The notes below the pieces were generated by a model. The model made no database searches. It was not told the origin of the DNA and worked only from the letters and a program-made list of their open reading frames with translations. Made by a program: the position numbers and the translations under genes. Positions 34,935 to 39,049 of a DNA stretch of 64,000 bases are shown piece after piece; positions within the stretch are counted from its first letter, which is position 1; each line of letters begins with the position of its first letter. The stretch is from Blastocystis sp. Blastoise (lineage: Eukaryota > Protista > Bigyra: Opalinata), in assembly GCA_039096225.1 (NCBI GenBank), contig JBBPEB010000027.1, forward strand, positions 310,001-374,000. Direction: 5' to 3'.

Positions 34935-37900
34935 ATGTCTTCAAAGCAAAAATCATATTTCTGTGCAAGTTGCAAGAAGAGTTTGAATACCATACCGTAT
35001 GTTGTTACTCTATGTTTACCATTTCTGTTTTTAGAACGAAATATATACATCCTAATCTTATTGGTTTATATTTATGTAAGAAATGCAACGATCAATATCA
35101 TGGTGGTGAATTCTTAAGAGGTACATTCTTCAATAATCTATATTGTTTTTCTATTTGTTTAAAAAGATAATGGTTATGATGATTATTGCAGATGTTGTGG
35201 TGATGGTGGAAACATTTTTATTTGTCCAAAATGTAAAAATGGTCTTTGTGATTCTTGTATTTCTTTTATTGCAGGACCCCAAGGTATTTTCTATTTTGTT
35301 TTATTTTATGATATTCTATATTTGTCTCTTATGCTATTTATTATATATAGAAGTTCTCAAATCAAAGAATGATGATAGTTATGTATGTATTTTATGTAGA
35401 ACTACGTATGTTTTTGACTTTTTACAAAAGAATTGTCATAGTTACATAAAAGATGAAAATAATGTATATTCATAATTATTTATATAAGTAATACTTTATT
35501 ATTATTAAAGTTCTATTCTTTATATAATAATAATAATAATAATAATAATATATATATATAGTATAAATCTACAATAAAAATGTTAATTCGTTCAAAAAAA
35601 AGTATATATACATATATTTATATAATTATTATATATATAGATGTAACTATTAATAAAAATGGTAAAAATAAAAAAAATAAAGATATTTCAGGTATATATT
35701 TTGTTATAATACTTAGAATTCTATTTACTATGTGCGATATATATATAATTATAATTATTATATTTTTAGGGAATAATACTTCAACATCAAAGACTAAATT
35801 CTCTATAAATAATGAAAATAACCGTGATTCTATTGACGCATATAAAGAAGATCTATCTATCTATAAAAAGAAGAAGGCTATTTCTTCTTCAAATAATGTA
35901 CATGAAAAGAGAACTAATAGTAAAAATAAAGAAAAAAAAGAAAATATTAATATGTATAATAAAGAGAAGAATCATTCATATAAGATTGATGACGCATCTA
36001 TAGAGAGTGATGATGACGATGATATAGACATAGGAATACCTGATTTTAAAGATAATATAGTAAAGGACATTGATAAAGATATTCTTGATAATAATAATAA
36101 ATTAAATAATAATGATAAATTAAATGATAATAAATTAAATAATAATGATAAATTAAATAATGATAAATTAAATAATAATGATAAATTAAATAATGAAAAA
36201 TTAAATGATAATAAATTAAATGATAATGATAACAATGAAGATAATGATCAGTTAAGTGATAGTGATACATTAAATAATAATAAGTTAAATAATAATAAAG
36301 TTAAAAAAAGGCGTTTAATTCAGAATAATCAGAGAGCAAAAAGAAATACTACAAGAAGATCGAATCTATATATATATTCTAAAGATATAAGTGATGATAT
36401 AGAAGAAGAAGAAGAAGAAGATGATGATGATAATAATAATGATAACGATGATGATTATTATGATGATTATGATGATGATGATGATGATGATGATGAAGAG
36501 ATAAGTAAAGAGAAACGTAAATCCTCAAAGAAACGTGTTATCTATGAAGAATCTGAAGGTATATATATATATGTATAATATATATATTTATATATAATAT
36601 ATATATAGATGAAGATATATCAGCAATTGATATCCATAAAGATGTATATAAGATGTTTATTATTATATTAATAATAATAATATTATTATTATTCTATAGA
36701 AACAAAACAAAGAGCAATTATCAGCTATTGAGAAAATGTATATATATTTATAATATATATATGTTTAATAAATATACATAGTTTAATAATTCAGCAAGAT
36801 TTAACAATGGGTAAAGAAATCTGTCCAATTCCCGTGATTAATACGATTGACGTAAAAAATCCACTTGATGATTTTATATATATATCTATATCAAAAGCAG
36901 AAATAAGCGTTCCTTTTCACAAAGCTCCAAATATATGGTCTATTAAAGATGACGAAGGTATATATTATGGAGGATGTGACTGTGAAAATATATGCAAAGA
37001 TAACTGCTCGTGTAAACATGTATGTTTATATTATTATGTTTATTATTATTTTGTTTATATTATTATGTTTATTATTATTATGTTTATTATTATGTTTATT
37101 ATTATTATATGTGTTATTATGTTTATTATGTTTATTATTATGTTTATTATTATTATATGTGTTATTATGTTTATTATATTTATTATTAGTATTATTATTT
37201 TATTTTTATATTATGTTTATTAAAATATATGTTTATTAAAATATATGTTTATTATTATTTATTATATTTATTACCAATATATTAGAATATATATATCTTT
37301 TTATATTCAATATAAACATATATATAGGACCCATTAGTATCTCTTCCTCTTCCCGCCAAAGGTTGGATGCCCGCCATATGGGAATGTGATTCTTCTTGTA
37401 TATGTAACAAACATCTCTGTAAATATAGAGTCACAAGGCAACGAATGGTATATATTATTATTATTATTATTATTATTATTATTATTATTATTATTATTAT
37501 TATTATTATTATTATTATTATTATTATTATTATTATTATTATTATTATTATTATTATTATTATTATTATTATTATTATTATTATTATTATTATTATTATT
37601 ATTATTATTATTATTATTATTATTATTATTATTATTATTATTATTATTATTATTATTATTATTATTATTATTATTATTATTATTATTATTATTATTATTA
37701 TTATTATTATTATTATTATTATTATTATTATTATTATTATTATTATTATTATCAATTATTATCAATTATTATTATTATTATTATTATTAATTATTTAATA
37801 TCTATATATAGAAAGGAATGTGTTTATTTAGAAAACCAGATGACAGATGGGGTGTCCTCGCTACTGAAAATATTCATAAGTATATATATACTACACTTTT

Positions 37901-39049
37901 TCTATCATTTCTATACTATTATTTGCTATCATATTTTGTTTTATATATTATGTGTTATATATATATATATATAGAGGTGATTTTGTATGTATAATTGCTG
38001 GAATATTAGTCAAAAGAGATACTATTGAGAATTATGTATATGAAATGATATGATTCATAATTATAATAATATTATTATTATTATATTATTATTATATATA
38101 TAGAATAGGAATAGTAATATTCTTTCTTTGGATCCTCCTGAACTCAGTATATATATAAATCCATGCATTACAAAACAACATGTATATATATTATATAATG
38201 ATATATTCTATATAATAAGCATTACATATATTATATATAATGATGTATTCTATATAATAAACATATATATAATAAGTATTCCATAACATATGTATATATA
38301 TAGAGAAGATCTTATCCTTCTATAAATGATACTTGTTGGATTATTCGACAGAGTGTGTATTTACCCATAAAACTAAAGATCTATGCAGGATATATCCTTA
38401 TATATTATTATGATTATTATTATTAAGAATTAATTAGTTAACATTTTATATATATAATAATAACTAATAATGATTCATAGAATTCTTAATATTCTTCAAG
38501 CATGTGTCGCGTTACATCTGTTAATAAAGAAACTGGAATGATTGGTATTTTTATATTTGATAAAATTCAAAGAGATTCTGATATTAAAACATTAATTTAT
38601 AAAGATTTCTTATTAAAACCTAATGAAGTATAAATATAATTATTATTATTATTAAGAATTATATATAATTATAATAATCATCATTTATTAAATAAATCTA
38701 CAATTATAATAATAATCATTTAATAAAATTATATCTATATACTATAATAAATATTTCTAGAAAGAATCACGTGAATATTTCAATCCTAATGAAGATAATA
38801 TTAATTGTCTTGATTACTCAACGTATATATATCTTTTATATTAATGTACACAGATTTAAACTATAATTAAATCAATATATATATAGATATGGTAATATTG
38901 TTCATTTTATGTGTAAAGATATGGAAAATCCATGTTTAGCTAAATTACCTATTTTTAAACGATCAATCTCTGTTGCTTCTCCAGATGTAGCACTCATCGC
39001 TAGAAGAGATATCACAAAATATACAGAATTAACTTGGAATCCAAATTAA
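34935..39049 (+). CDS. ADD domain (ATRX/DNMT3-type) + acidic linker + pre-SET + split, degenerate SUV39/SETDB1-family SET domain
   Basis: CASC..HPNLIGLYLCKKC..DGYDDYCRCCGDGGNIFICPKC..LCDSC..YVCILC-type ADD; DLTMGKEICPIP, GCDCENICKDNCSC..ECDSSCIC..C (9-Cys pre-SET); WGVLATENIHKGDFVC; LDYSTYGNIV..ARRDITKYTELTW. Confidence 0.85.
36090..36225 (+). repeat. Coding minisatellite encoding NNDKL-like repeats
   Basis: Repeated GATAAATTAAATAAT-like units in the ADD-SET linker. Confidence 0.8.
37453..37752. repeat. ~300-bp perfect (TTA)n microsatellite in an intron of the ADD-SET gene
   Basis: Direct inspection. Confidence 0.95.

Follow-up and report, generated by a model that had tools for sequence, protein, structure and literature searches.

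A gene in the genome of the tortoise-gut Blastocystis sp. Blastoise very probably joins, in one reading frame, an ADD domain of the ATRX/DNMT3 type to a low-complexity linker and a SUV39-type Pre-SET/SET module. It lies at positions 34935-39049 of the forward strand of a 64,000-nucleotide stretch of DNA (the window), which has ~21% GC and spans positions 310,001 to 374,000 of contig JBBPEB010000027.1 (contig C2) in assembly GCA_039096225.1. On balance, the sequence favors the interpretation that this gene encodes a maintained, non-catalytic ADD-pseudo-SET chromatin factor. The evidence that carries this interpretation is the retention of every cysteine ligand of the ADD and Pre-SET domains, the replacement of the catalytic SET motifs, and the recurrence of both features in a diverged paralogue on another contig.

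Gene structure and domain order

The gene model was built by hand from positions 34800-39400 and then checked by script for frame and splice sites. It comprises 18 exons (Table 1) with a total length of 2337 nt, which specify 778 codons and a single terminal stop with all phases closed, from the ATG at 34935 to the TAA at 39047-39049; the ends of the gene span given in a preliminary description of the window thus coincide exactly with the start and stop codons. Sixteen of the 17 introns have a GTA-type donor and a (T/A/C)AG acceptor, and GC content ranges from 14 to 42% in the exons and from 1 to 29% in the introns. Database searches were conducted with single exons, and support for the joining of the 778-residue model was limited to local frame checks and exon-wise alignment. 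Because tortoise strains of Blastocystis, which have longer and variable introns, keep genome-encoded stop codons (PMC12129017), the TAA at 39047 was read at face value. Read-through of this stop, by means of a ciliate-like code or an extra exon, would yield a Cys-rich CxxxCxCxxC stretch. This was rejected, as glutamine is encoded by CAA/CAG throughout, the Cys-rich stretch is not present after the stop of the paralogue, and the tortoise strains keep canonical stops.

Between exons 4 and 7, the sole frame-preserving route runs through exons 5 and 6, of which exon 6 is in phase and skippable. Exon 5 (YKSTIKMLI) shows homology to the beginning of the long exon 5 (YKNIVQKLL) of the paralogue, which is located on contig C15. 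In the paralogue, exon 4 splices in phase into the exon with this initial YK motif, which remains open for 285 codons, and frame-consistent introns continue from there to the Pre-SET domain. Because exon 4 of the C15 copy runs in phase through the 285-codon exon to the Pre-SET, the fusion is considered to be real, and the earlier proposal of a one-gene ADD-SET fusion is upheld by frame-consistent exons that join the two halves in both paralogues. Two adjacent genes might be read here instead, an ADD protein that ends at the TAA at 35475-35477 and a SET protein that begins at the ATG at 35580: if the exon 4 donor were unused, a stop would follow after four codons, exon 5 holds an in-frame ATG, exons 5 and 6 resemble introns in composition, and intergenic spacers can be short, e.g., 90 bp upstream of the window gene. 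Such a split is very improbable, as the exon 4 donor is a consensus GTATAT, the in-phase splicing of the C15 copy bridges the two halves, the ADD-then-SET order and the exon phases are common to two unlinked loci, and as little as ~100 bp of 8% GC would have to accommodate both a terminator and a promoter.

The ADD domain

Exons 1-4 encode a CxxC-x20-CxxC arrangement typical of a GATA-like finger, followed by four CxxC pairs that constitute a PHD finger, giving 12 cysteines in total. The PHD finger is of the atypical ATRX/DNMT3 type, with all-Cys ligands and a CRxCxxGG signature, and when exon 3 was compared with the PDB, three ATRX ADD entries ranked first (E=2e-4). The genome, which was scanned as a 33.34-Mb, 34-contig assembly here and below, holds three further fingers akin to exon 3, plus one weak match. 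When the four clear fingers were combined in a profile, the profile matched the ATRX ADD at E=2e-7, with the next PDB match, the PHD finger of CHD4 (E=4e-3), four orders of magnitude behind. The GATA-like half was too short for significance in profile comparison with the PDB. Its similarity to Pfam ADD_ATRX was weak both for exon 2 (E=0.057, profile positions 30-52 of 56) and for a paralogous GATA-like exon (E=0.031), the best score being 13.7 bits versus a cut-off of 25.7 in scans of single exons. A whole-genome scan with ADD_ATRX gave no match and missed the window gene itself, which makes this blank uninformative. When the arrangement of the fingers, the spacing of their ligands and the ATRX-specific similarity are considered jointly, the ADD assignment is sound, in agreement with the complete GATA-like plus PHD domain noted in the preliminary description. 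An acidic pair (DD) is present ahead of the first PHD cysteine, and the equivalent pair in ATRX and DNMT3 structures contacts unmodified lysine 4 of histone H3 (H3K4).

The Pre-SET and degenerate SET domains

A whole-genome Pre-SET scan revealed one other gene, a canonical SUV39-type gene on contig C32 that encodes GWG, CYAGE, RFMNHSCDPN and ELCYDYGY motifs and ends in a CxCx4C post-SET segment (CFCGSAKCRKNLY, followed by the stop codon). This gene is without a chromo or other reader domain. In the window gene, the nine cysteines of the Pre-SET (Zn3Cys9) are distributed over exon 10, with five, and exon 11, with four. Exon 10 alone scores 29.9 bits against Pfam Pre-SET (cut-off 29.1) and shows 42% identity with its counterpart in the canonical C32 paralogue and 34% with that of the C15 copy. 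The intact nine-cysteine Pre-SET that had been described earlier is retained in the present model.

Exons 13 and 18 are clearly homologous to the canonical SET domain, as judged from alignment. The score of exon 13 against the canonical C32 exon was reached by 3 of 2000 shuffles (9 of 2000 for the C15 exon), while exon 18 matched the C-terminal part of the C32 SET domain (SET-C) at E=2e-4 by BLASTP and at E=1.2e-4 by profile comparison, and matched Pfam SET at E=0.18. The preliminary description had listed four losses, namely RFINHSC to HFMCKDM, EYxGE to IIAGI, ELxxDY to ELTWNPN-stop and the lack of a post-SET, all of which proved to be real upon alignment with C32. Motif II reads IIAGI where C32 has CYAGE (IAGI versus YAGE). 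In motif III, HFMCKDMENPC, CK is aligned with NH and M with the zinc-binding Cys of canonical RFMNHSC. In motif IV, ELTWNPN-stop, W-N-P is aligned with Y-D-Y, and the stop is found two residues past that P. An alternative last exon that restores these motifs, which had been raised as a possible objection, was not found in 33-41 kb of the window, where tblastn with the canonical C32 exons returned only exons already modelled and no NHSC/ELxFDY or post-SET exon. Furthermore, because the C15 copy shares the truncated end, an alternative last exon is not needed to explain the C-terminus.

In canonical enzymes, motif III, (R/x)F(I/M)NHSCxPN, binds S-adenosylmethionine (SAM) and supplies a Cys ligand of the post-SET zinc. 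Activity in the SUV39 family depends on each of three elements, namely the NH motif, the terminal Tyr and the zinc site of the post-SET. From these alignments, the window protein is likely to be catalytically inactive. It might still be a lysine methyltransferase with a non-canonical active site, given that the Pre-SET zinc cluster is intact, RWGV occupies the position of the GWG SAM loop in the window copy, ..YAG is conserved in exon 15 of both copies, and the gene is clearly under selection. This is improbable, as both paralogues have replacements in motifs II, III and IV and lack a post-SET, the protein terminates two residues beyond the position of the catalytic Tyr, the GWG loop is also lost in the C15 copy, and what is known of the SUV39 family speaks against activity when even one of the required elements is gone.

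A diverged paralogue with the same losses

A locus on contig C15 came up in genome searches with either the ADD exon or the last exon as the query. The model of this paralogue has 17 exons and encodes 1281 residues with one terminal stop, in the order MSSK start, ADD, linker, nine-cysteine Pre-SET and SET, the linker being low-complexity and at the equivalent place as that of the window gene, and much longer. Corresponding exons have similar or identical lengths (C15/window: 59/62, 86/86, 117/117, 116/113, 120/120, 68/68, 58/61, 62/62 and 163/163 nt) and the same phases throughout, and the phases of the small exons 8 and 9 (1 to 0 and 0 to 2) are matched by two small C15 exons. Exon-wise identity between the copies is 18-57%; it is highest in the ADD fingers, at 55-57%, and in the last exon, at 49%, and is 18-35% in the exons flanking the last exon.

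The SET domain of the C15 copy reads IFG at the GWG position, VAGI at motif II and RYIQIDTESPN at motif III, and ends with TELTWNPL-stop. TELTWNP is invariant between the two C-termini, motif III is remodelled alike in both copies (x-x-D-x-E-x-P), and all Cys ligands, 12 in the ADD and nine in the Pre-SET, are kept in both. Because the losses and the truncated end are shared, it was concluded that the losses predate the duplication and were kept while the rest of the sequence diverged. Losses shared in this way point to a pseudoenzyme that has been maintained and speak against decay. Had a copy of a SUV39 gene been decaying as a pseudogene, its catalytic motifs and post-SET would likewise be lost, and yet there is hardly any prospect that such decay accounts for the window gene, in which consensus splice sites join 18 exons into an intact frame of 778 codons, every one of the ADD and Pre-SET ligands remains, and the same state, including the invariant C-terminal motif, is found in so divergent a paralogue. 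The structural reading of the preliminary description is strengthened by the C15 copy. The window gene is not unique, being one member of a small gene family.

Proposed function

In the favored model, the ADD domain would dock on H3 tails (unmodified K4, perhaps with trimethylated lysine 9, K9me3), and the long disordered linker, basic and then acidic, would tether it to a zinc-stabilised SET scaffold. With the residues for SAM binding and catalysis in motifs II, III and IV replaced, and the post-SET zinc site gone, including the motif-III Cys, the Zn3Cys9 Pre-SET and SET scaffold may have been kept as a binding surface. This surface would most likely bring in or regulate the reader-less C32 SUV39 enzyme, in which case one polypeptide would read H3K9 methylation and another would write it. 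Because an intact, reader-less SUV39 enzyme is encoded in the genome, a role as partner or regulator is a more specific hypothesis than the recruitment of silencing machinery, the putative role given in the preliminary description. Targeting or regulation of the reader-less enzyme by the ADD-pseudo-SET proteins is the most parsimonious proposal. Partnership with the C32 enzyme in particular is proposed tentatively, by analogy with known systems. A fuller scheme, in which the two ADD-pseudo-SET paralogues target or allosterically activate C32 through SET-SET or Pre-SET contacts in a two-polypeptide H3K9 system, is speculative and somewhat doubtful. If true, it would represent an equivalent, for lysine methyltransferases, of the DNMT3L-DNMT3A pair, with an independent origin.

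A non-catalytic protein might also act independently of the SUV39 enzyme, either as a stand-alone binder that recruits other factors or as a competitor for the H3 tail with an anti-silencing or boundary function. The similarly remodelled motif III and the conserved, enlarged SET-I insert suggest a new binding surface over mere loss, and ADD fingers also occur in this genome together with MYND, a protein-interaction domain, in the absence of an enzyme. Nothing specific speaks against such a role, which is the main rival and is considered unlikely, and the data do not separate it from the partner model.

Several points weigh against the interpretation of the window gene as a maintained ADD-pseudo-SET factor and against the function proposed for it. 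Conservation was judged from two paralogues of one genome only. The SET assignment of the last exon consists of a match at E ~1e-4 to one paralogue and a sub-threshold Pfam match, and the small K-rich exons 5 and 6 are 14-15% GC, an AT-richness like that of introns. The 3' cut of one intron, at 38499 or 38500, is ambiguous, with a one-residue effect on the protein. As to function, the histone specificity inferred for the ADD domain comes from motif similarity, the K9me3 cage of ATRX seems only partly conserved in it, and the sole link to the C32 enzyme is co-occurrence in the genome.

A probable U12-type intron and other noncoding features

The intron between exons 15 and 16 is probably U12-type, on the basis of several sequence features. 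In both paralogues, /ATATCCT(T/C) occurs at the same position and phase, and TTCTTAAT precedes the 3' splice site by 11-21 nt. The 3' end in the window lies at 38499 (AA), or at 38500 (AG) if the 5' cut is placed at 38390; the C15 counterpart spans positions 1734-2056 of L013, and the 3' end is non-AC (AG or AA) in both copies. The 5' motif alone occurs in 15 copies in the window, which is its chance frequency, and therefore the arguments for the U12 call are the position and phase of the motif, the spacing of the branch site and the conservation between the paralogues. A U6atac snRNA gene was identified in the genome (63.8 bits, above threshold), as was a U12 snRNA candidate that scores 46.8 bits, below the Rfam threshold of 53 bits, with E=6e-7, and that contains the canonical branch-site-binding sequence AUGAGUAAGGAAA; the loci concerned are L014 1501-1644 and L015. 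Hundreds of minor introns have been described in Blastocystis ST1 (PMC10639083).

A GT at 38357 was considered as the donor of exon 15 and rejected, as homology to the C15 exon (15 of 28 residues identical) runs 12 residues further, up to ..YAG. Beyond this GT, the sequence up to the in-frame stop at 38424 offers no further GT donor. Within exon 15, the segment TCWIIRQSVYLPIKLKIYAG (38334-38391) weakly resembles the canonical GWG-to-YAGE strand pair of the N-terminal SET region (26 of 2000 shuffles). In the DNA, the resemblance would extend into the U12 5' splice site, where GGA TAT ATC CTT would read G-Y-I-L versus canonical G-E-I-L. It was not reproduced with the C15 copy, and may reflect a partial internal duplication or chance.

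Two other introns of the gene are repetitive. Intron 10 (37020-37327) is made of TTATTATG-type repeats, and intron 11 (37448-37811) contains ~300 nt of unbroken (ATT)n at 1% GC. The corresponding C15 introns consist of (TA)n, indicating that microsatellites turn over within conserved intron positions. The 3' flank (39050-39130) holds three TTTGT-containing words, TAGTTTGTAG, CATTTGTAAC and CATTTTGTATTCG, which resemble the T/G-rich element located 3' of cleavage sites in human-associated Blastocystis. This downstream element was reported as not enriched in tortoise strains (Rus-B paper, PMC12129017).

Other chromatin genes in the genome

The start of the canonical C32 gene may be a split ATG (AT/gtaagt...ag/G), with MSSR as the resulting N-terminus, or else an in-frame ATG further upstream, at L004 5770. 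Chromodomain genes are present at at least six loci; no match to the chromo-shadow domain was found in the genome, a blank that is not evidence of absence. The sole C5 DNA methyltransferase (PF00145) match in the genome, at C34:406469-408306 (86.8 bits), is unlinked to any ADD locus and may act on tRNA, as a DNMT2-type enzyme, or on DNA. Two genes pair a MYND zinc finger with an ADD, without an enzyme domain (Table 1). On the same strand, ~1 kb downstream of the one on C16, Tudor-knot and MOZ/SAS (MYST acetyltransferase) exons were observed.

Table 1. Exons of the candidate ADD-pseudo-SET gene and related features of the genome (window positions, unless a contig is named)
Feature	Location	Strand	Description
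Exon 1	34935..34996	+	MSSK start and first CxxC of the ADD GATA-like finger; C15 shares MSSK and the phase-2 exon end
Exon 2	35035..35120	+	Second CxxC of the GATA-like finger (..HPNLIGLYLCKKC..); 86 nt in both copies, 57% identical to C15
Exon 3	35167..35283	+	PHD finger of ADD (DDYCRCCGDGGN...CPKC...CDSC); top PDB matches are ATRX ADD
Exon 4	35351..35463	+	Final PHD CxxC and ADD C-terminal helix region; C15 counterpart 116 nt, phases equal
Exons 5 (35562-35601) and 6 (35641-35691)	35562..35691	+	K-rich basic segment between ADD and linker
Exon 7	35770..36558	+	263-codon low-complexity linker with Asn/Lys repeats and long Asp/Glu runs; open frame
Exons 8 (36609-36643) and 9 (36700-36737)	36609..36737	+	Small exons preceding the Pre-SET; required for frame closure
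Exon 10	36782..37019	+	Pre-SET part 1: ..GKEICPIPVIN.. and CxCx3Cx3CxC, 5 Cys
Exon 11	37328..37447	+	Pre-SET part 2 (ECDSSCICNKHLC, 4 Cys); tblastn with C32 exon E=3e-4; C15 exon also 120 nt
Exons 12 (37812-37879) and 13 (37975-38035)	37812..38035	+	SET N-terminal part; RWGV at GWG position, motif II IIAGI
Exons 14 (38104-38181) and 15 (38304-38391)	38104..38391	+	Enlarged SET-I insert, conserved in both apparently dead paralogues
Probable U12-type intron	38392..38499	+	5' /ATATCCTT; branch-site-like TTCTTAAT at 38483-38490
Exons 16 (38500-38627) and 17 (38761-38822)	38500..38822	+	Remaining SET-I insert and strand preceding motif III (..NCLDYST); C15 exons 113 and 62 nt
Exon 18	38887..39049	+	SET-C, degenerate motif III (YGNIVHFMCKDMENPC), motif IV TELTWNPN, then TAA; no post-SET
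Canonical SUV39-type gene	C32:683737-685470 (L004 5737-7470)		~300 aa; Pre-SET 42.3 bits, SET 67.5 bits
MYND+ADD gene	C19 ~536.4 kb (L011 4860-7012)	-	MYND and ADD fingers
MYND+ADD gene	C16 ~1.4234-1.4258 Mb (L012 2892-5291)	+	MYND and ADD fingers

Searches beyond the genome and significance

Searches outside the genome yielded no confirmed relative, a blank attributable to exon-sized queries, length filters and what the searched collections contain. When 1.8 billion representatives were searched exhaustively with phmmer, the Pre-SET exon gave a single match, to a short stretch (WSIKD..YFGG) of a bacterial repeat protein, which is spurious. Proteins of tortoise strains share only 40-42% identity with those of human-associated subtypes (PMC12129017), and because the exon is 79 residues long and identity to those subtypes is ~40%, the phmmer blank says little. 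A word search with the Pre-SET exon (stop-free 147-residue frame, residues 1-79 scored) gave no candidate, under a length filter that excludes full-length relatives. Metagenome scans with alignments of the degenerate SET-C and of the ADD PHD finger produced pattern matches, none of which was confirmed by tblastn, and the ADD piece matched only generic zinc-finger clusters in the ESM Atlas, all below 0.9. In the literature, with InterPro architectures outside the search, no paper was found that describes an ADD-SET fusion, nor was one found that joins Blastocystis with SET domains and histones. As far as can be told, the ADD plus SET architecture is unreported, and its novelty is unproven.

Pseudoenzyme paralogues that steer active relatives recur in chromatin biology, as exemplified by DNMT3L, SUVH2/9 and, in some contexts, GLP. 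The combination of an ADD reader with a dead SUV39 module would add a new and independently evolved case of this kind, and would provide the first lead on heterochromatin targeting in Blastocystis, which is a very common gut eukaryote. The two putative ADD-pseudo-SET genes and the one minimal SUV39 enzyme form a testable set. Should databases already list this architecture for other stramenopiles, the finding would shrink to a lineage-specific domain shuffle.

Comparison with known systems

The ADD domains of ATRX and DNMT3A/3B/3L have the same organization as that of the window gene, with a GATA-like C2C2 finger followed directly by a PHD finger and helix, and 12 cysteines that are spaced alike. 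Ahead of the first PHD Cys, ATRX has the acidic pair DE and the window gene has DD. In ATRX and the DNMT3 proteins, the ADD is found with a SNF2 ATPase or a C5 DNA methyltransferase, whereas in the window gene it is found with a SUV39-type Pre-SET/SET module.

The Zn3Cys9 Pre-SET and SET scaffold of the window gene is shared with SUV39H1/Clr4, G9a/GLP, SETDB1 and DIM-5, and the SET domain of SETDB1 also bears an enlarged insert. The active SUV39 enzymes have chromo, ankyrin or Tudor/MBD readers and the full catalytic set, while the window gene has an ADD and is without the NHxC motif, the catalytic Tyr and the post-SET. The plant proteins SUVH2 and SUVH9 combine a SUV39-family Pre-SET and SET, lacking post-SET and activity, with a chromatin reader, and function as recruiters. 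In contrast to the window gene, their reader is an SRA domain, which recognizes methylated DNA, and their role is in RNA-directed DNA methylation, a process that is not known in Blastocystis; their origin is independent.

DNMT3L follows the same logic from the DNA methylation side, in that an ADD is fused to an inactivated methyltransferase paralogue while active paralogues are encoded in the genome. The dead module of DNMT3L is a Rossmann-fold DNA methyltransferase that acts as a partner of DNMT3A/B, whereas that of the window gene would be of the SET fold.

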